In this document: positions 29,860 through 38,334 of the stretch, piece after piece
Layout: each line of letters opens with the position of its first letter
Position numbering within the stretch: the first letter of the stretch is position 1
IMG/VR virus record: IMGVR_UViG_3300033997_000092
Coordinates: 186,001-250,000 of that record
Strand: one strand, 5' to 3'
Length of the DNA: 64,000 bases
The notes under the pieces: generated by a model
Told to the model about the DNA's origin: nothing
Databases searched by the model: none
Seen by the model: the letters and a program-made list of their open reading frames with translations, nothing else
Position numbers and translations under genes: made by a program

Positions 29860-32800
29860 TTATAATTGAAGATTTCCCGCAACGTCTGACAATACTAAAG
29901 TAAGTTCGTTACTCTTTAATATATTGCCTGCGCTGTCTTTTATTAAACAGTATACCCTCCACTCACTGCGTTTTTCAGGAGGTGTGTTTGATGATAAGTG
30001 TCCATCTATAACTTCCACTCTAAATAAGTCATTATCTGGAGAGAAGTCATTAGGCACGGCTACATCAATTTTAGCAACATAATTGCTATTAGGGTTGTTT
30101 ATGTTGTTGAAAGTTTCGACAGCTTCCCATTTGTAAGAATATGTCTTTGCAGGATCGTATGGATACGAAGCAGCAATTCCATGTCTGTTACGTGCGGCAG
30201 GATTACTGACAAACCCACCGTTAGCTTCCATATATGCTATTTTTCCTGGCTGCGCTATTTCTGTATGGTTTTGATCAGCTAATTGAGAGAATCCTATACC
30301 AAATATAACTGCACATCCAAAAGCTTGGTATTGTGTTGTTGAGTATGATTCTGCGGCATAGTTAGTACGTGTGAAGTTTAAGTCACTCACTGTGCCTCCA
30401 CCGACATTCGGCTTCAGTATAGTAACAGTACCTTCGTTATCCAGAATTGTTGCATTCACAGGATTACTTATACGCAAGTAGAACTGTCTGCCATTATTGT
30501 CGTGCGCTGGAGTTAATGTTTCCACAGGAACATTAACACTTGCTTGTCCCGCTAACAATGTAGCTGTCCCACTGCGACTATTGTAATCCGGATTTTGCAC
30601 TGTGCTTTCTGGAGTAACCATTAACTGCGCTTGGTTGTAGCTTGCATCTATTACACCATCTGTAGGAACGCCTTGAACAAGCGGACTTCCAGGAAGGTGA
30701 GCTAAATGGTCAACTACATAATATTGAGGAGTAGCGCGCCATTGACGCTGTGTAGCATCGAATGAAATACGCTCATCCGACAAGTTGTTGAATGTTGCCT
30801 GTAGTGCTGCATTGGCCCAGTAGTTACGGTGCATGTCCGTCGGGAACACACGCATTGGGAAGTGCAGTACAGCTCCATTACGCAGCAGTGTTCCAAGTGC
30901 TTGGCCTATACGCGCAGTATTACCTGACATATAGACAGCAGCAACTGAGAATCCTGACATCTGGAACCACAATTTAGAATCGGCTACAGTAATAATGTCA
31001 GCATCCGTTGTAGACAGTGTGTTTTCCCACGTGTTGCTATTGTTTGGGATAGTACGCATTGGAACCTGCACAACAGTCATGTTGTAGATGTTACGCATTG
31101 CCTGAATAAAGTTAGAGCATTTAAGTGCCCACTCTGTTTCAGGTTCACCTTCACCTAGTATCAGCCATTTCTTGTTAGTCAAATCTGGAATTTTCATCTT
31201 CCATGCGTTAACTGTCATCTTGGCTTCTGGTGTAAGCGTAGCAAACGATGATACTGCCTGAATAGTGTTTATTTGCGAACATTCGGTCGCACGATATTCA
31301 CTGTTCATCAGGCGTTCCCACGAAGCATCTACTACAAGAGAGCCTGCTGTTCCGGGGAAGTTTTGTACGCCGAAAGTAGCTAAGTTCGGCACTGCGTCAC
31401 CGTATGGACGGTTCTCATTGCCTGTACTGAACACTGCCAGAGTACCACTTAATCCACTACTACCGCCAACACTTTTAGCTGTCCCATCTACAGTAACAAA
31501 ATCAAACGTCACATCAGTTGGAGCAGGAATATTGCTGCTGACAGTTACTTGGGCAACGGCACCTTTAGTCACATTGGCATCACTGACCACCAACTGCACT
31601 TCGTCATCACATACAGGTATAACTTTATCATCTACTTCAATGTCCAATACAGGAACAGGACAACCAACAAAGTATTCCCAGCTTGAGCCTAATGGTGCAT
31701 CGATTCTCACTGTGATACGTTTACGTCTGCCATTATCTAAAGCACTGTTTGTAAGGAATTGCACGAACGTAGTGCGCTTGCCTGTTTTGGCTTCGATAAG
31801 ATTCATGTCCATGTCGAATACAGACACGACATATTGGAACTCGCCTTTACCAACTACTTTGATACTGACTACGCCAGGATCGACACCATTATCCATATCA
31901 TAGTTGTCTTCTGTGCTGCTGTGGCCCATAGACTGCAATCCAGCTACAGGTTCCTCACACGGCCACGGATTATCACGGTAGCCTGGAGTGTTTGTACAGA
32001 ACAGAGTATAATACCAGCTTTTCATATCGTCATCGAGCAGACGCTCTGCCGATGTTACACGTACCATGATGTCATGTACTTCTGTAGGGAACTCGTAAGG
32101 TTTCCACCACCACTTCAACGAACCTAATTCTTGAGCTGGGTCCATTGTACTTGCTACACGATTCTGGTTGTGATACACTTCAAACTTATCTGCATTTAAC
32201 CAGCTAGTGTAATCAAGAACTAACTGCCAGTTCACGTTAGGGTCTGATACTGGGCCGATGTAATGATGGAATTCATAGTACCACTTACCGTCTTCCAAAC
32301 GTGCTTCAAGAGGAAACACAGTTGCGTGACACGGAGCAGGGTAAATAGGAGTACCGACATATTCTTCTGTGAATACACCCAAGAATTGATTCAAGTCAGT
32401 GTTATCCAAATTCACAACAGCTAAGTTGGGTTTTGGTCCCACAAATTGATACGCCCAGCGAGTACCGTCGCTACCACGCACACGAATCATAACACGTTGT
32501 TCACCTTCACCTACAGCTTGGTCAAGATAGAATTCGATTTTGCTACGATCTTTAACACGGCCACAAGTTGTTGCTATGCGAGTTCCCATGTAATAAACGT
32601 CAACACTGATACCTTCACTGTCGTAGCTGGCAAACAACACTTCAAAGTAACCTGGACGATCACCTGTGTTGAATATAGTTTCAGTTATCTGACTTCCGCC
32701 ACTGAACACACTGCTTCCCAAGTAGTTCGGGTTAGCATAAGTACCACGACCGTATGACGGCGTAACACCTGAATCATCGTAGCTTTCAATAGCATAGTTT

Positions 32801-33231
32801 AATGCTGGACGTTTAAGCACGTAGCCTTTAGGTGCACCAGCATCCGGCAACTTTTCAAATCCCGGTTCACCTGCATCAGGCAAATCATATCCTGGAGGAT
32901 AGCCTGTTATCAGATTGAACAAGTTACCATCAGAGCCTATTCCATTTCCAGAACCAGCTTCGTCTGCTGTTAGTCCTGGAGGACAATTCACTGAACCTAC
33001 TACGCGGAATTCACACTCAACATCAAAGCGAGGATCGAATGTGCAGTCGTTATGTATAAACTCACTATTGGCACCATCACGCATACGGATAGCTTTTGGG
33101 TCAATAAGCAGCCAGCTCCTGTTGTCGCGTGACCTGATACGCAACGTAGCTTTGCATGGATCTAGCCATTTATTGTTGTAGGAGTTTCTTATTAAGAGGC
33201 GTCCCAGCGCTGGGATTTCGTTATCAGCCAT
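29860..33231 (-). CDS. Giant multidomain tail fibre / adhesin with three beta-sandwich repeats and interrupted Calx-beta domain
   Basis: FDFVTVDGTAKS...PDYNSRSGTATLLAGQASVNVPV; three repeats ending W.Y...[CG]P or CT. Confidence 0.7.
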   Translation of the reverse strand: MADNEIPALGRLLIRNSYNNKWLDPCKATLRIRSRDNRSWLLIDPKAIRMRDGANSEFIHNDCTFDPRFDVECEFRVVGSVNCPPGLTADEAGSGNGIGSDGNLFNLITGYPPGYDLPDAGEPGFEKLPDAGAPKGYVLKRPALNYAIESYDDSGVTPSYGRGTYANPNYLGSSVFSGGSQITETIFNTGDRPGYFEVLFASYDSEGISVDVYYMGTRIATTCGRVKDRSKIEFYLDQAVGEGEQRVMIRVRGSDGTRWAYQFVGPKPNLAVVNLDNTDLNQFLGVFTEEYVGTPIYPAPCHATVFPLEARLEDGKWYYEFHHYIGPVSDPNVNWQLVLDYTSWLNADKFEVYHNQNRVASTMDPAQELGSLKWWWKPYEFPTEVHDIMVRVTSAERLLDDDMKSWYYTLFCTNTPGYRDNPWPCEEPVAGLQSMGHSSTEDNYDMDNGVDPGVVSIKVVGKGEFQYVVSVFDMDMNLIEAKTGKRTTFVQFLTNSALDNGRRKRITVRIDAPLGSSWEYFVGCPVPVLDIEVDDKVIPVCDDEVQLVVSDANVTKGAVAQVTVSSNIPAPTDVTFDFVTVDGTAKSVGGSSGLSGTLAVFSTGNENRPYGDAVPNLATFGVQNFPGTAGSLVVDASWERLMNSEYRATECSQINTIQAVSSFATLTPEAKMTVNAWKMKIPDLTNKKWLILGEGEPETEWALKCSNFIQAMRNIYNMTVVQVPMRTIPNNSNTWENTLSTTDADIITVADSKLWFQMSGFSVAAVYMSGNTARIGQALGTLLRNGAVLHFPMRVFPTDMHRNYWANAALQATFNNLSDERISFDATQRQWRATPQYYVVDHLAHLPGSPLVQGVPTDGVIDASYNQAQLMVTPESTVQNPDYNSRSGTATLLAGQASVNVPVETLTPAHDNNGRQFYLRISNPVNATILDNEGTVTILKPNVGGGTVSDLNFTRTNYAAESYSTTQYQAFGCAVIFGIGFSQLADQNHTEIAQPGKIAYMEANGGFVSNPAARNRHGIAASYPYDPAKTYSYKWEAVETFNNINNPNSNYVAKIDVAVPNDFSPDNDLFRVEVIDGHLSSNTPPEKRSEWRVYCLIKDSAGNILKSNELTLVLSDVAGNLQL

Positions 33232-33287: not shown

Positions 33288-33782
33288 TTATTTAGTTGCT
33301 ATCCATAAAGCGCCTGCACCTACTGCACCAGGATCTTCAGCTTGAATGTAGATCTGCACACGTCCATCTTGTCCTCTGATGCCTTGAGGACCTGTAGATC
33401 CTGTAGGACCAATAGGACCTTCAATGCCTCTAGGTCCACGTACTCCAGGCTTACCTTGAGGGCCTTGGGGTCCACGACATCCACGAGGACCTTGAATACC
33501 TTCAGCTCCAAGTAAACCATCTACACCAGGAGAACCATCGAATCCAGGAAGACCTTGACGACCTGTTCCCATACTTGATAGCGTTGGATATCCGCGAATG
33601 TGCAGAGGCTCAAATCCTGGAATAGTTATTGTAGTTATTCCCATTACAGGATCGAATACACCAGTTACACTTTGCCCTGCTGTAGGATCAGGTAATACAG
33701 AAAGTGATTTGCCTTCAGCTACAACTTGACCTGCTACTGCGGTAGCTGGCTTAATCATATCCATAGATACTTTGGTAACCAT
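33288..33782 (-). CDS. Collagen-like protein
   Basis: 23 G-X-Y triplets, C-terminal EDPGAVGAGALW. Confidence 0.85.
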   Translation of the reverse strand: MVTKVSMDMIKPATAVAGQVVAEGKSLSVLPDPTAGQSVTGVFDPVMGITTITIPGFEPLHIRGYPTLSSMGTGRQGLPGFDGSPGVDGLLGAEGIQGPRGCRGPQGPQGKPGVRGPRGIEGPIGPTGSTGPQGIRGQDGRVQIYIQAEDPGAVGAGALWIATK

Positions 33783-33792
33783 GAATCACTCC

Positions 33793-34440
33793 TTAATCGA
33801 AAAACTGTTCAATGTCATCATCAATCTGACCCACAGTAGGATTAACCCAAATACCGCCAGGACCTATCGATGGTCCGGGATCGATTTCACTGATAACGAG
33901 ATTGATACGTCCGACTGGGCCTTGAGGACCAATGGGGCCTGCTGGACCAGGAGCGCCTGTTGGGCCTGTTGGGCCTTGAGCTCCAGTCGGACCTGTAGGA
34001 CCTGTAGGTCCCATTTGACCCATAGGACCCGGACACCCAGGAGCTCCCTGAGGACCTATGTCTCCAGGCAAACCGTCGCGTCCATCTAAGCCCTGAGGAC
34101 CTGTTGGGCCCTGAGGACCAGGACATCCTGCTTCACCTTCTAAACCGTCGCGTCCATCTTTACCTGGAGCTCCGTCAGGACCCGGATCACCCTGAGGACC
34201 TTGAGGACCCTCAGGTATCTGACTTACTATGGGAAAGTTACCCAGCACTTGTGTACTGCCGTCATAGAACGAGAATATAACTTTGCCTGTAGTTTCGTCG
34301 TATCTAAGTCCTGTCACAGGGGACACTGTTGAAGCAGTTCCTTCTGTGGGAGCAAGTACGCCTCCAACAACGCTTAAAGATTTACCTTCAGCCGATGTAG
34401 GCGCACGAACCATGCTTGTGTCAATTCTTGTTAGTTTCAT
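33793..34440 (-). CDS. Collagen-like protein
   Basis: 34 G-X-Y triplets, C-terminal [13 protein letters not shown]. Confidence 0.85.
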
Positions 34441-34443
34441 TAC

Positions 34444-35949
34444 CTATACCTTATGAATAGGACCCGCGTTATCTAAGTTGTGAATTAAATAACCACTCAC
34501 AAAGAATACGTCGGTCGTTTCCACATTGAGGCTGACTACAGGCTTCTGGTCTTCAATAACTTCCACTTTAATTACATCGTGGAACTGACCAGATTCGTGA
34601 TAAATTTTGTCACCAACAACTACACGATACATACGTTCAAAATAACAAACGCCATTACGTTGAATTAATATGTTTTCGTCTGATGTTAATGTGACAGTGC
34701 CATTCAGTCTGATAAACCTTCCGAATGAGCTATGCGTGGCTGTCATTACAACAGCGGCTTCATACTCTGCTTTAAAATTAGTTGTTGTCCACGATAAGAA
34801 CTGATCGTTATCTGAACTATCAGGAAGTCCTGCAATACGCACTGAGTCAACCGCGTCTGCTTCGTAAAGCGATTCGACTAATACTTTGCGCCTGCCCGCA
34901 GAAATCATTTGACCGTACGGTATACAGCCGCCACCGCCACCTCCAGGAGGGTTAGTTGGAGGGGTAGCTGCATTAGTTGCAGAAAACTTAAACGTACCTG
35001 TCAATGTCAGTGTTTTGTTGTTGTCACCTGTGTCTTTGATTGTCAGTATTACCTGACCTTCGCGGACTTCAGTTGTTCCTGGAGCAACATACACACGACA
35101 ACGCAAGTTCATGTTTGTGGAACTATCGCCTGTTTGATATATGTAGACATTTGGCGCCATCGTAAGAAAATCACCTGTCCACTTATACTCAAAAGGACCT
35201 TTACCGCCACTAAAATTGTCGAGTGTGTACGCAGCAATGCCTTCGTAGAAATCACCACCGACATGGGACAGCGTTAATGCGCGACTAGGAATGCTGCCAC
35301 GCATTTGCTCTATAATCTCTGGATTAGTAGGAAGACCTGTATCAACAGTAACAAGTTGCCCCCAGATATAGACAAGTGGATCAGTAGGTTCAGAATCGCT
35401 GAATACTACAGATGTTATAGGCGTAGGACCTGTAGGACCTGTAGGACCAATCAAGCAGCTATTACCTATCGCTCCTCGTGCACCGTCAGGTCCTGTCGGT
35501 CCTATTATACCCATCGGGCCTGTAGGACCTTCATCGCCTCCACAGCCTAGCGGGCCTACTGGTCCACGGGGGCCATCTTCAGCATCTAATCCTGGCTCAC
35601 CCTGAATACCCATCACACCAGGAATACCAGCACAGCCTACTTTGCCCTTACGGCCATCAAAGCCTTTGTAGCCATCACGGCCTTTACGTCCAGGAAGACC
35701 TTTCTTGCCAACTTTACCTGTACCCAGATTGGACTGTGTTAAGAATCCTGTAGCTTCAAAAGTACCGTCGGGCGTAATGAATGTTAGAGCACCACGTACA
35801 CTGTCCCAAGCAAACTCATAAGAACTTGACTTCGCTACAGGAGGTGCTTCGTAATCTATTAGCGCAGAAGAACCTGGTACGATAGCCTTTTGACCATCGT
35901 ACCCTTGTTCAGCAGCTACGTTTTGTAAGTTAACGTAAGTGTCTGACAT
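34444..35949 (-). CDS. Collagen-like protein with C-terminal Hint domain
   Basis: About 33 triplets with two non-Gly interruptions, a beta-rich domain, a PPGGGGG linker and a Hint domain. Confidence 0.8.
   Translation of the reverse strand: MSDTYVNLQNVAAEQGYDGQKAIVPGSSALIDYEAPPVAKSSSYEFAWDSVRGALTFITPDGTFEATGFLTQSNLGTGKVGKKGLPGRKGRDGYKGFDGRKGKVGCAGIPGVMGIQGEPGLDAEDGPRGPVGPLGCGGDEGPTGPMGIIGPTGPDGARGAIGNSCLIGPTGPTGPTPITSVVFSDSEPTDPLVYIWGQLVTVDTGLPTNPEIIEQMRGSIPSRALTLSHVGGDFYEGIAAYTLDNFSGGKGPFEYKWTGDFLTMAPNVYIYQTGDSSTNMNLRCRVYVAPGTTEVREGQVILTIKDTGDNNKTLTLTGTFKFSATNAATPPTNPPGGGGGGCIPYGQMISAGRRKVLVESLYEADAVDSVRIAGLPDSSDNDQFLSWTTTNFKAEYEAAVVMTATHSSFGRFIRLNGTVTLTSDENILIQRNGVCYFERMYRVVVGDKIYHESGQFHDVIKVEVIEDQKPVVSLNVETTDVFFVSGYLIHNLDNAGPIHKV
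34477..34926 (-). other. Hint (intein/Hedgehog/BIL-like) autoprocessing domain
   Basis: Begins at Cys in GGGGG-CIPYG; V..L..GD.V-like, LT block B, VVVGDKI, VVSLNV..TDVFFVSGYLIHN end motif; 150 aa, no endonuclease. Confidence 0.8.
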
Positions 35950-35964
35950 ATATTTGCCTTTAGT

Positions 35965-38334
35965 TTACGGCAAAGGAACTACAATGCCTGTCAACTCTGC
36001 TACAAGTGCTATTGTGAACTGGCCAGCAACAACATTCGTTACTTTAGCTTTAGCTACAATATCAACTACGCCATCTGGGTAGTTTTCTTTAAGCAGAATA
36101 AGACTTGACCCTTTAGAACCGTTACCATATCCGTAAGAGTTTTCACCGCCACGCTGAGTAGCAATACCTGTCTCGCCTGTACCTGGAATACTACGACCGT
36201 AGTCAACTGTCGCTTCACTAGGACGCTTAACAGCCAGAATGAATTGCAATTCTTCATTGCCTGATGTCACAGTGTAACCTGGACCTAAACGGGCACTAAA
36301 GTCTGCATGGACGTTAATCATTATGTCTGTTTTGAATTCCACACGCTGCGTAATGACAACTTCGTTTGTGTCTTCGGCGCGTTGGCGTGAACTGATGCGT
36401 TGGTAGTTACCTTTATCAAGTCTGACCTTATCAGTCGAACTGATTTTGAAGTTAGGGAACGTACCTTCTATTAGCATGCCTGGACCTGGAACCAAGTCAA
36501 TCGGCACAGCAGGCAGGAATATTGGGTCAGCATTCTGACGTATTACCTTGTACCCTGTTGGTGTAGGAATAATATCAGTTACCATTCCACGCAATCCAGT
36601 GTCGCTGCTTCCTTCTGCTCTTACGTTATGGAAAATCATTACTTCAAGTGGTCGTCCCGTAGCAAAATCTGTTCTTGCTACAAGCTTGTTGCCTACAATA
36701 GAATACTCTGACTTCATAACGTGTGCACCTGACTCACTCAAAAACACTAGGTCTTTTGACTGTGGTGCGATTGGCAGTGAAAGCACGTTACGCTTGGTAG
36801 TCGGATTGAACGTAGCCGTGATTACCTGTGTACTATAGCCTGGAATTGGACGCTGTATGAAAGCGTTGATTTCAATCTTCAAGCCTACACCAGGAGCTTC
36901 GCTGAATATTACTTTCCTGCGTACAACATCTACGGTATATGACGAATGCACTGTCATTATCCTGTCGATGAAGCACCAAGAATAGAATACGTTTTCAATA
37001 TCAGCAGGCAAGTCGAATTCACGACGGGAACCATCACCAATATCTTCAAAGCTAACGCATTCCGTGTACATGCCCGAGTGAGGCTCTAACTGGAATAAAC
37101 GCGCATCGATTTCTAACCCAGAAGGAACATTCTCTGCAAATTCCAGCATGTTGTCTTCGATGTTAGCGGACTGGCGGAACTGACGCACACCAGAAATACT
37201 GATATACCAGTAATGGCTATTCTTGCGATAGCTGTACAGGCGCATCTGAGTTTCATCTACACCTGCTGTCAGTGGATCTTCGCTGTACAGAAGGAATTTG
37301 TTTGTTTCTTCCATAACAACTTGCGTTATCGCACTGAACTTCAACTTACCTGGAGGATGATACAGGTTTCCTCTTGTGCGGGAAGCTGCTGCTCCACTCG
37401 GTACCCAACGTGGAACACCATCAAGCGGACCAGCTACAAGTACCCAGTCTTCATCTGTTCCTGCACGGCTAGGCAATCCTGAACCTGAGCCTTGCACTGT
37501 GTTTTGTTTCCAGATACTTACAGTGCTTGTTACATCAAGTTCCAAGAACGCCAAATCACGGGTCATTACTTCTTCGGCTGCTGTTATAACACAACGTCGT
37601 GTAGTACCTTCTCCAGGACCTGAAACAATTTGAACTACAACAATGTCATCTTCTACAAGACCATAATCAGTTATCAATGAATCGACTTTGAATATCGACG
37701 GGTCTGTTACTTCTGTTGGGTTACCCATAAACAACTTGGTAAATCCCAGGAAGCTCCAATGCTTACCTGCCAATCCACCGCGCACAGCAAGTCCTGCTGT
37801 TTCACTGTTTTGTTCATCTGGATTGACGACAATATCAAGCACAGCCACAGCATTGGTGATTGCTTCTGCTGGATTAGGTAAGGCATCGACGTTGCCTACA
37901 CTCGGTACTGAACCGAATTCTGACAGTGTGACATCGATAACGTGTGCATTGCCTTGTGCTAAGTGCAACAAGAATTCTATTTGCGCCGCACGATTCTTCC
38001 GTTTAGTAACAGATTCACTGAAACGTACACGGCCTAACACAGTGCCGTCGTTCAGTCCAATAGTTGCTTCCGACAGTTCTATTGATGAATTGCCTCCTAC
38101 TTCACGAGGTACAACTACAGTGAACCGAACTGTATTGCGGTTTAAAACTTCAATGTAGTGAATGCGTCCGCTGTGGTGTTCTGTACCTAGTAACGCATCT
38201 GGTGTCTGAGCCGGTTCTGAGCCTTGGTAATCACCAACAGCAAAGAAACGGGGGCGAATAACTGCGCCCCCTGCTTCGGCACTCAGCAACGCCTGTTCAC
38301 CTTGTGGGGTAAGAATCAAACGATCTGGTGTCAT
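35965..38334 (-). CDS. Baseplate-attached tail-collar fibre protein (DUF3751 / P2 gpH-like N-terminus)
   Basis: ILTPQGEQAL....FAVGD ... VGG ... EATIGLNDGTVLG N-terminal domain; internal GDGSRREFDLP-type repeats. Confidence 0.65.
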   Translation of the reverse strand: MTPDRLILTPQGEQALLSAEAGGAVIRPRFFAVGDYQGSEPAQTPDALLGTEHHSGRIHYIEVLNRNTVRFTVVVPREVGGNSSIELSEATIGLNDGTVLGRVRFSESVTKRKNRAAQIEFLLHLAQGNAHVIDVTLSEFGSVPSVGNVDALPNPAEAITNAVAVLDIVVNPDEQNSETAGLAVRGGLAGKHWSFLGFTKLFMGNPTEVTDPSIFKVDSLITDYGLVEDDIVVVQIVSGPGEGTTRRCVITAAEEVMTRDLAFLELDVTSTVSIWKQNTVQGSGSGLPSRAGTDEDWVLVAGPLDGVPRWVPSGAAASRTRGNLYHPPGKLKFSAITQVVMEETNKFLLYSEDPLTAGVDETQMRLYSYRKNSHYWYISISGVRQFRQSANIEDNMLEFAENVPSGLEIDARLFQLEPHSGMYTECVSFEDIGDGSRREFDLPADIENVFYSWCFIDRIMTVHSSYTVDVVRRKVIFSEAPGVGLKIEINAFIQRPIPGYSTQVITATFNPTTKRNVLSLPIAPQSKDLVFLSESGAHVMKSEYSIVGNKLVARTDFATGRPLEVMIFHNVRAEGSSDTGLRGMVTDIIPTPTGYKVIRQNADPIFLPAVPIDLVPGPGMLIEGTFPNFKISSTDKVRLDKGNYQRISSRQRAEDTNEVVITQRVEFKTDIMINVHADFSARLGPGYTVTSGNEELQFILAVKRPSEATVDYGRSIPGTGETGIATQRGGENSYGYGNGSKGSSLILLKENYPDGVVDIVAKAKVTNVVAGQFTIALVAELTGIVVPLP

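Follow-up and report, generated by a model that had tools for sequence, protein, structure and literature searches.

A putative BIL-type Hint module at the C-terminus of a collagen-like phage fibre protein

Type A BIL domains are Hint domains defined by a Cys at position 1, a terminal His-Asn pair and the lack of a nucleophilic residue at +1 (PMC4031507). They cleave at both of their ends and can ligate their flanks via a free amine, and both cleavage and splicing proceed without a +1 nucleophile (PMC4031507). The most conserved residue of Hint domains is the block B His (His B:10). When it is lost, the N-S acyl shift is usually crippled; the Tko CDC21-1 intein, which lacks this His, remains active through compensation by Lys58 (PMC4031507). 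In Tetrahymena thermophila, the BIL2 domain of BUBL forms isopeptides between a Lys ε-amine and a C-terminus, and its N-extein can be joined to other proteins as well (PMC8616854). The literature searched yielded neither a study of C-terminal Hint domains on phage fibres nor biochemical or proteomic evidence for cleavage of the protein described here or of its family members.

The window analysed here, a stretch of 64,000 nucleotides of virus record IMGVR_UViG_3300033997_000092, carries a gene whose product, P0001, shows the sequence features that define a type A BIL. We propose, with a probability of roughly one half, that the last 160 residues of P0001 form a type A BIL-like autoprocessing module that is still functional and probably serves as a removable assembly aid.

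Organization of the gene and fold of its C-terminal domain

The gene (34444..35949, on the minus strand, as are all features below) was defined by ORF translation and encodes a 501-aa collagen-like virion or tail-fibre protein with a C-terminal Hint module. Its synteny is kept in related jumbo phages, and aa 28-494 match PHROG 38766 'virion structural protein' (2e-58). The N-terminal domain (aa 1-76; 35722..35949), delimited by eye in the translations and by alignment of orthologues, is common to both downstream collagen-like paralogues and gave no family match. It is followed by a collagen-like G-X-Y region with three Cys (aa 77-177; 35419..35721), and the Pfam Collagen match of this region (7e-13) together with its 28 triplets, the longest run being 15, bears out the collagen fibre proposed in the initial annotation. 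The three collagen paralogues might be thought to form a heterotrimer, but their collagen regions differ in length (about 100, 100 and 70 aa). The middle globular domain (aa 178-329; 34963..35418) is probably an Ig/PKD-like beta-sandwich; the leads are weak, namely Atlas structure matches to PKD and Ig clusters at a TM of ~0.5 and a DUF6252 match below the Pfam threshold (0.002). If the Hint domain is removed, this middle domain would be the distal part of the mature fibre.

A Pro/Gly linker, PPTNPPGGGGGG (aa 330-341; 34927..34962), ends in the -1 Gly and leads into CIPYGQ, the predicted scissile bond being Gly341/Cys342. The Hint domain had been placed directly after a Gly run, starting at Cys; the Cys start holds, and the run consists of six Gly and not five. 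Ribosomal slippage at the poly-Gly was rejected because its codons (GGA GGT GGC GGT GGC GGC) form no homopolymer. The Hint domain proper extends from Cys342 to Asn491 (domain residues 1-150; 34477..34926) and, together with the tail, to Val501 (34447..34926), followed by the stop codon at 34444..34446; the interval 34444-34926 originally given for the domain with its stop codon was thus exact. At its C-terminal end, SGYLIHN is followed by LDNAGPIHKV, and translation confirmed the earlier reading of a His-Asn end followed by these ten residues without Cys, Ser or Thr (34447..34476). A family HMM run on six-frame ORFs detected a single Hint copy in the 261-kb genome.

An AF2 model of the Hint domain, obtained from a 53-sequence alignment, reached a pLDDT of 92.8 and a pTM of 0.88, with tail residues 155-160 disordered (pLDDT below 50); a first run from a three-sequence alignment (pLDDT 59.5) was discarded. 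Foldseek returned 45 PDB matches at E≤1e-3 with a probability of 1.00, and those listed all belong to BIL domains, inteins or Hedgehog, ranked with BIL2 (6y75/6tmm) first, then BIL 2lwy, followed by inteins, including those of Pho and Pab CDC21-1, and Hedgehog 1at0. In BFVD, the model matched Hint proteins of phage NCTB (TM 0.87-0.91). The family profile (A4) matched BIL 2lwy at 2e-14 and BIL2 at 1e-13, all inteins being weaker, whereas the profile of the window's clade alone reached only 0.07 with known BIL domains. P0001 itself attains no Pfam Hint-family threshold, the score for Intein_splicing being 15.6 bits where 35.8 are required. Given the 502 relatives described below, the profile match to BIL and the Foldseek probability, the Hint assignment is no chance likeness. 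Both the beta-horseshoe fold and the first-residue Cys expected of a HINT domain are present and the block B His is absent. By fold, by the profile similarity of its family and by the absent +1 nucleophile, P0001 is best placed with the type A BIL domains, in line with the initial description of a non-splicing, BIL- or Hedgehog-like Hint rather than a canonical intein.

Other class assignments were rejected. A class 1 intein agrees only in its His-Asn, the +1 residue of P0001 being Leu, the ten-residue C-flank lacking Cys, Ser and Thr, and the domain being terminal. Type B BIL or Hint_2 was ruled out by the invariant terminal His-Asn, a Hedgehog/Hog Hint by the same pair and by the mere 10-aa tail, and Pretoxin-HINT by the absence of a match in P0001, by scores below gathering in its relatives and by the lack of a toxin domain downstream.

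A phage-borne family and the block B substitution

An exhaustive HMMER search yielded at least 1,610 representative relatives, and a profile of the window's clade found 502 relatives at E≤1e-10. Exhaustive profile searching was used instead of a word-index protein search with aa 300-501, which had returned three close relatives only. tblastn of the P0001 Hint domain against isolated phages gave four weak matches, the canonical member P0033 being the better probe, and a pattern search built on a four-sequence alignment recovered only the own contig and unrelated collagen proteins. Where genomic context was inspected, the genes encode phage fibre or virion proteins, and members sit in baseplate and fibre modules adjoining Peptidase_S74 fibres; look-alike clusters came from Uroviricota. 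The module, consisting of linker, Hint domain and tail, is common to proteins with unrelated N-terminal parts, which match tail-fibre PHROGs; host proteins of the top family members span 145-3399 aa, and in 126 of the best 152 members the domain ends no more than 30 residues from the C-terminus. A 1304-aa protein of phage NCTB corresponds to the orthologue of 1123 aa in the window plus a Hint domain, and NCTB carries three Hint copies in all, one of them degenerate and stand-alone. On P0001, the Hint domain is kept across the whole orthologue group. The best Pfam model for the relatives is Pretoxin-HINT (PF07591; Alexandra gp112 2e-4, NCTB 1e-3, P0012 9e-5), none of them scoring above 23 bits (cutoff 27.7), while Hint_2 gave a weak partial match below threshold (4e-4); P0001 had no Pretoxin-HINT match at E≤1 in Pfam and no domain downstream. 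We conclude that the family is large, undescribed and mostly phage-borne.

The family consensus comprises Cys1, T-x-E-H and His-Asn without a +1 nucleophile. Cys1, the predicted N-terminal nucleophile (Cys342; 34924..34926), is present in 91/91 aligned domains, with Gly at -1 in 55/91 and poly-Gly in 41/91. Block B has Thr in 156/167 and His in 151/167, and the terminal His-Asn pair, the predicted site of Asn cyclisation (aa 490-491; 34477..34482), is complete in 165/167 (His 167/167, Asn 165/167). The block F Asp (domain Asp139, aa 480; 34510..34512) occurs in 128 of 173 aligned domains and is invariant in the window's clade.

In P0001, block B reads Thr-Ser-Asp-Glu (aa 422-425; 34675..34686), with Glu425 (34675..34677) in the canonical His place. 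That TSDE occupies the position of the T-x-x-H motif, as had been noted, is agreed upon by the family alignment, by a HMMER alignment in which the clade's 'ltsee' stands opposite LTHDH of the M. jannaschii KlbA intein, and by the AF2 model, where residues 81-84 form a turn between strands 78-81 and 85-90 that fits block B. Across the 173 domains of the family HMM alignment, this column holds His in 151, Glu in six and other residues or gaps in 16, and Glu is confined to the six domains of the window's clade; the claim that Glu is unusual depends on this broad family sample. The Glu clade is monophyletic (support 100/100), and the change from His to Glu had a single origin in the window's lineage. 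P0086 of the same orthologue group has lost the His independently, with Gln in its place. His110 of the domain (aa 451; 34597..34599) is the sole clade-specific invariant residue besides Glu; it is invariant in the six clade members, with His in only 7% of the other 167 domains. Because it aligns with a turn residue that is usually D, N or T across the family, we do not put it forward as a compensating His.

Apart from His84, every position conserved family-wide is also invariant in the Glu clade; at a clade divergence of about one substitution per site, no change has affected Cys1, the Thr of block B, the Asp of block F, His-Asn or the tail Lys. The dN/dS was 0.05 for the Hint domain with its tail and 0.03 for the remaining protein. 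In the Hint domain of a wastewater strain, 97% identical, 11 codons differ synonymously and two conservatively; codons flanking TSDE differ synonymously and TSDE itself is unchanged. Since this strain belongs to the P0003 lineage, with which it shares both I460T and V464I, its variants are not independent of the dN/dS result. From such purifying selection it follows that the domain matters but not that it cleaves, as the same conservation would be expected of a distal domain that stays attached for good. The domain had been thought possibly inactive upon loss of the His, which is disfavoured by the invariance of the other family-wide positions in the Glu clade and by the dN/dS of 0.05. From the sequences, we read the module as active and not as a relic.

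The C-flank of the family modules measures 1-26 residues, and of 120 short tails, 118 have a Lys, where about 50 would be expected, the maximum in 2,000 resamplings being 68. The Glu clade had seeded the search from which these tails come, and the 150 representatives with the best scores were used; some sampling bias is possible but should be small, as most alignments stopped short of the Lys. Each of the two tails without Lys carries an Arg in its stead. As a motif, the tails show A, I, V, L or F at +1 and D or E at +2, with Lys mostly at +4 to +6 or at +1/+2; its position ranges from +1 to +13, and never is +3. None of the 120 tails contains Cys, and Ser or Thr is found at +1 in 10/120 only. 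In tandem Hint arrays, nothing but K, KG or KGG links one domain to the next Cys. The Lys of P0001 (Lys500; 34450..34452), clade-invariant, lies at +9, beyond the family mode of +4 to +6. The tail Lys was absent from the initial annotation.

Proposed processing and alternative explanations

In the predicted mechanism, an N-S acyl shift by attack of Cys342 on the carbonyl of Gly341 would produce a Gly-thioester, and cyclisation of Asn491 would cut the Asn491/Leu492 bond, so that a Hint domain of ~16.5 kDa would leave the fibre. The mature protein would then be the ~34-kDa collagen and Ig-like part ending in GGGGGG. The Gly thioester might be resolved by hydrolysis or by an amine, candidates being the tail Lys or the freed alpha-amine of the tail, either of which would leave the 10-residue tail on the fibre. 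In the window's lineage, the module would have stayed functional after the change from His to Glu, possibly with an altered rate or pH dependence. Its role would probably be to aid folding or assembly as a C-terminal part that is later removed, or to act as an assembly checkpoint, and may be likened to that of the Peptidase_S74 intramolecular chaperone of neighbouring fibre genes. Indirect support for the self-removing module put forward initially comes from its place at the extreme C-terminus of very different phage fibre and virion proteins, its presence or absence on orthologues and the company of Peptidase_S74, and the initial idea that the C-terminal Gly is ligated may likewise draw on the BIL2 isopeptides (PMC8616854) and the near-universal tail Lys.

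The latter idea leads to a BUBL/BIL2-like splicing or ligation directed to Lys, which we consider unlikely for P0001. Its first step would be the same as in self-removal; the Gly341 thioester would be attacked by the ε-amine of Lys500 or of a Lys in a further virion or host-surface protein, Asn491 cyclisation would free the Hint domain, and the C-terminal Gly of the fibre would be left in an isopeptide bond, the module being a ligase or capping device. Tetrahymena BIL2 is the top structural match, the N-flank ends in Gly-Gly like ubiquitin-like proteins, and the strict His-Asn plus tail is hard to explain by N-terminal self-removal alone. The tails agree with such a route in their excess of Lys (118/120 against about 50), in their lack of Cys, in the clade-invariance of Lys500 and in the K, KG or KGG linkers of the tandem arrays. 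Against it, both Lys-less tails have Arg, which suggests an electrostatic and not a nucleophilic role; moreover, the Lys position is variable (+1 to +13, never +3) and past the family mode in P0001, where the tail is disordered in the AF2 model. Extended to the whole family, the same chemistry would make the modules a phage-borne, energy-independent device for ligating a poly-Gly thioester to a Lys ε-amine of the own tail, the virion or the host surface, a generalization that we hold as doubtful. In such a device, the own-tail route would be splicing with Lys replacing the +1 Cys and a stable isopeptide as product, transfer to a Lys elsewhere in the virion or on the host surface would give covalent attachment, and the Glu clade would be re-tuned, e.g. 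slower or pH-gated, and fire only post-assembly.

It is rather improbable, in our estimation, that the module is a permanent, non-cleaving distal domain in which Glu stops the N-S acyl shift and Hint acts as a structural or binding knob at the fibre tip, whether or not Asn-mediated trimming of the tail goes on. His B:10 is normally needed for activation of the N-terminal junction (PMC4031507), the independent change to Gln in P0086 indicates that relaxation of the block B His recurs within this orthologue group, and strong purifying selection would fit a structural role just as well. A purely structural domain, however, needs neither the catalytic set nor the tail Lys, all of which are invariant, and the family module is dispensable on orthologous proteins. 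Very improbable is a selfish or neutral mini-intein-like terminal element, spread by recombination among phage structural genes and removing itself without benefit to the phage, as might be suggested by the presence/absence polymorphism on orthologues, the portability across unrelated N-terminal proteins and the three NCTB copies with one degenerate and stand-alone, since there is no homing endonuclease or conserved-site insertion, the module is kept across the whole orthologue group, and one stop codon could delete this 3'-terminal module at no cost, yet dN/dS is 0.05.

If self-processing is true, more than a thousand phage fibre or virion protein families bear an unstudied terminal BIL-type Hint domain, which would be a second, chemically unrelated solution to a removable C-terminal module besides Peptidase_S74, and the annotated fibre lengths and receptor-binding tips of such phages would be wrong by about 17 kDa. 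The tail Lys and the BIL2 precedent make isopeptide ligation to Lys directly testable, and such a reaction would be of interest in protein engineering as a Cys-free ligation to Lys with a traceless Hint. The Glu clade, itself under purifying selection, is a natural experiment in which the most conserved Hint residue was lost, with close His-bearing relatives for comparison; isolated phages that retain the His include Erwinia phage Alexandra (gp112) and Dickeya phage AD1.

Comparison with known systems

Among phage systems, a functional analogue is Peptidase_S74, which is, as proposed here for the Hint module, a C-terminal, self-cleaving and removable module of phage fibres, and whose genes adjoin family members. 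It acts as an obligate trimer and through a Ser-Lys dyad. Neither its fold nor its chemistry is related to that of the present module, and there is no sequence similarity; P0001 has no Peptidase_S74 match in Pfam, and its fold is that of Hint.

The Tko CDC21-1 intein is, like P0001, a Hint domain without the block B His; it resides in a replication protein and truly splices, whereas the replacement in P0001 is Glu. Hedgehog/Hog (1AT0; TM 0.66/0.72) shares the C-terminal position of the Hint domain and the Gly/Cys junction, at which Hedgehog cleaves with transfer of its upstream protein to an external nucleophile, but has no terminal His-Asn and possesses a sterol-recognition region; P0001 has the His-Asn and no such region. 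Pretoxin-HINT (PF07591) has the type A BIL chemistry predicted for P0001, but it precedes and releases a C-terminal toxin domain, whereas the P0001 module is followed by a short tail only.

BIL2 of Tetrahymena thermophila BUBL (6Y75, 6TMM) is the best Foldseek match (E 3e-7, TM 0.71-0.75), with Gly-Gly ahead of Cys1, a terminal His-Asn and a C-flank Lys that serves as acceptor; correspondingly, P0001 has GGGGGG before Cys and a Lys in its C-flank. Unlike P0001, BIL2 is eukaryotic, lies between two ubiquitin-like domains and retains the block B His (H69) as a key catalytic residue (PMC8616854), while the C-flank of P0001 is a 10-residue peptide and its isopeptide formation is hypothesised.

The family's best profile match is the Clostridium thermocellum BIL (PDB 2LWY; 2e-14), to which the P0001 Hint domain also aligns in Foldseek (TM 0.69/0.79), and with which it shares the Hint fold, Cys1, the terminal His-Asn and the absence of Cys, Ser or Thr at +1. 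As in the phage family, type A BILs are carried by variable surface-type proteins and not by conserved enzymes. The phage module differs from them in being terminal, preceded by poly-Gly, borne on fibre or virion proteins and followed by a C-flank of 1-26 residues with Lys, and the window's clade differs further in having Glu in place of the block B His.

Hint domain at the end of a collagen-like tail fibre

Translation of the ORF at window positions 34444..35949 (minus strand) yielded a 501-aa protein whose C-terminal 160 residues, starting at Cys342 (34447..34926, minus strand), come directly after PPTNPPGGGGGG. The protein carries TSDE at aa 422–425 and ends in His490-Asn491, followed by LDNAGPIHKV and the stop codon. 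All features described in the initial annotation were recovered, except that the linker comprises six glycines and not five. Collagen repeats were the sole above-threshold Pfam match (7e-13), the Intein_splicing match on the C-terminal part scoring 15.6 bits versus a cutoff of 35.8, and in PHROGs the whole protein was matched by phrog_38766, a ‘virion structural protein’ (2e-58). An AlphaFold2 model of the domain, built from a 53-sequence alignment of family relatives, was confident (pLDDT 92.8, pTM 0.88), with disorder restricted to the last six tail residues. Foldseek analysis against the PDB returned 45 matches at E ≤ 1e-3, and all those listed were Hint domains, headed by the bacterial intein-like (BIL) domain BIL2 of the Tetrahymena BUBL locus (6Y75/6TMM, TM 0.71–0.75) and the Clostridium thermocellum BIL domain 2LWY, with mini-inteins and Hedgehog 1AT0 next. 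In sequence searches, the profile of the family matched 2LWY (2e-14) and BIL2 (1e-13), and KlbA as best intein (6e-9). Among predicted viral structures the best matches were three Hint proteins of phage NCTB (TM 0.87–0.91), together with ‘uncultured Caudovirales’ proteins bearing a C-terminal Hint. The C-terminal domain of the window protein is a Hint domain.

The window belongs to a 261-kb single-contig phage genome, and tblastn revealed full-length counterparts, roughly 30% identical, in jumbo phages of the Erwinia Alexandra/Yoloswag/pEa_SNUABM group, in Dickeya AD1 and in phage NCTB. In these phages and in four metagenomic relatives the gene order is kept: a large tail protein, a ∼789-aa protein with a tail-collar-fibre N-terminus (Pfam PF12571), the Hint-bearing 501-aa protein, two shorter collagen-like paralogues (215 and 164 aa) and, last, a ∼1,100-aa protein. 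As the upstream 789-aa neighbour (35965..38334, minus strand) matches PF12571 at 1.4e-8, the Hint-bearing gene sits inside a tail-fibre module. The two paralogues (33793..34440 and 33288..33782, minus strand) adjoin this gene; all three tandem collagen-like proteins have an N-terminal domain of ∼75 aa in common and Cys residues within the G-X-Y region, the Hint module is confined to the first, and their order is the same in NCTB, Alexandra and the four metagenomic relatives. The NCTB orthologue was already labelled by its depositors ‘putative phage tail protein, contains intein domain’, and a literature search found no paper discussing a Hint domain of this sort on phage fibres. Near-identical gene copies occur in subsurface metagenomes, from which the window itself may stem, and in wastewater metagenomes of several studies, one wastewater contig being 97% identical across the whole gene.

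A 1,304-aa virion protein of NCTB (L001:8331-12245) aligns over residues 1–1134 with its 1,123-aa orthologue in the window (29860..33231, minus strand; E 1e-151), and its extra C-terminal ∼170 residues are another Hint module, which the window orthologue lacks. The module is thus facultative on orthologous proteins, suggesting that the mature protein does not need it. Genes of this kind often have, in its place, the unrelated, self-cleaving S74 module. Directly downstream of its Hint-bearing fibre gene, NCTB also has a stand-alone 153-aa Hint ORF (L001:6506-6967), probably a degenerate duplicate, which lacks Cys1 and the block B Thr/His (reading VTGY) but has kept His-Asn with a Lys after it.

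The family and its lysine-containing tail

An exhaustive search of 1.84 billion representatives, using a profile of three members of the window protein's clade, identified 1,610 proteins at E ≤ 1e-3, of which 502 reached E ≤ 1e-10. Of the best 152 proteins (145 to 3,399 aa), 126 have the end of the domain no further than 30 residues from their C-terminus, 14 bear the domain N-terminally, and 14 have more than one copy. N-terminal parts comprise collagen repeats (21/152), tail-fibre PHROGs and Calx-beta domains, language-model look-alike clusters were mostly Uroviricota, and on two contigs inspected the Hint-bearing gene lies in a phage baseplate/fibre module, directly after a Peptidase_S74 fibre gene. 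Cys1 is present in 91/91 aligned domains, preceded by Gly in 55 and by poly-Gly in 41. Of 167 aligned domains, 151 have the His of block B (T-[YF]-E-H-P) and 165 the terminal His-Asn. The +1 residue is A/I/V/L/F/K, and no Cys was found anywhere in the family tails.

Type A BILs possess His-Asn and no +1 nucleophile, and in them cleavage dominates and ligation to free amines is possible (PMC4031507). By the definitions given there, the family's sequence pattern fits type A; it falls outside class 1 inteins, type B BILs and Hedgehog-type Hint domains.

A family feature absent from the initial annotation is an enrichment of Lys behind His-Asn. Among 120 non-empty tails of up to 26 residues, 118 contain Lys and both exceptions have Arg, whereas same-length C-termini of this phage's own long ORFs contain it in about 50 of 120 (maximum 68 in 2,000 resamplings). 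Selection of the Lys by the seed profile is unlikely, as most profile-search alignments stop before it. The motif is loose: a hydrophobic +1, often Asp or Glu at +2, and a Lys whose usual places are +4 to +6 or else +1/+2, with no case at +3; in the window protein the Lys is at +9, invariant within its clade.

Several members (P0064, P0069, P0089, P0052, P0149) consist of tandem Hint domains, in which nothing but K, KG, KGG or KGGG separates His-Asn from the following Cys; such proteins, if active, would chop themselves into units or become linked via Lys. As a mirror image of the C-terminal architecture, a sub-family (P0098, P0099, P0109, P0111, P0114, P0121 and others) has the Hint at the extreme N-terminus (MSRF|C...), with a conserved GAPCSACxACG after His-Asn and 100–580 further residues.

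Replacement of the block B histidine by glutamate

Among 173 aligned domains, only six representatives, the window protein (P0001) and P0003–P0007, have Glu in place of the block B His (TSDE, TSEE, TREE, TLEE). They were monophyletic with 100/100 support in a maximum-likelihood tree of orthologous fibre proteins, and the internal divergence was about one substitution per site. Outgroup sequences retain His (NCTB TEQH, Alexandra THEH, P0011 TKEH), and Gln arose once, independently, in the outgroup P0086 (TPEQ). Numbered from Cys342, 35 of 160 positions are invariant in the clade, including every family-wide conserved position (C1, G5, N75, T81, G105, D106, L147, H149, N150), the block F Asp and the tail Lys. 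Only Glu84 and His110 (His451; 34597..34599, minus strand) are clade-specific invariants; elsewhere in the family, the latter position is mostly D, N or T.

Against a 95%-identical relative of the window protein, dN/dS was 0.05 in the Hint domain together with its tail, and 0.03 elsewhere in the protein. The 97%-identical wastewater contig, of the same lineage as that relative, differs within the Hint domain by 11 synonymous and two conservative codon changes, three of the synonymous ones flanking an unchanged TSDE. The Hint domain is therefore not decaying, which disfavours the possibility, raised earlier, that loss of the His might have left it inactive.

Proposed reaction and comparison with known systems

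Hint chemistry (PMC4031507), applied to the observed fold, family, conserved catalytic-residue pattern, terminal position and phage fibre context, would predict that Cys342 forms a thioester with Gly341, that cyclisation of Asn491 cuts off the tail, and that the Hint domain is released; if the thioester were hydrolysed, the fibre would end in GGGGGG. The strict conservation of His-Asn together with a Lys tail speaks for a role of the C-terminal junction as well. BIL2, the best structural relative, attaches the C-terminus of its N-extein to the epsilon-amine of a Lys (PMC8616854, section 2.4), and a splicing-like pathway in which the tail Lys replaces the +1 Cys is therefore a serious, if less probable, alternative. 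Both the His loss and the purifying selection would agree with a structural knob that stays attached for good, but the invariant Cys1, His-Asn and Lys would then be unexplained. A selfish terminal element would agree with the presence/absence pattern, but not with the strong selection: the module lies at the 3' end, where one stop codon would remove it.

The module is a type-A-BIL-like terminal Hint domain; the phage family to which it belongs is large and all but uncharacterised, and the His-to-Glu change is specific to its own clade. The initial interpretation is supported in part: its non-canonical Hint type is borne out by the fold and catalytic-residue pattern, and both functions put forward with it, a self-removing chaperone or a device ligating the fibre's C-terminal Gly to another molecule, are still viable. 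For an N-S shift without the block B His, the only citable natural precedent is the Tko CDC21-1 intein, in which absence of this His is offset by a Lys outside the motifs (PMC4031507).
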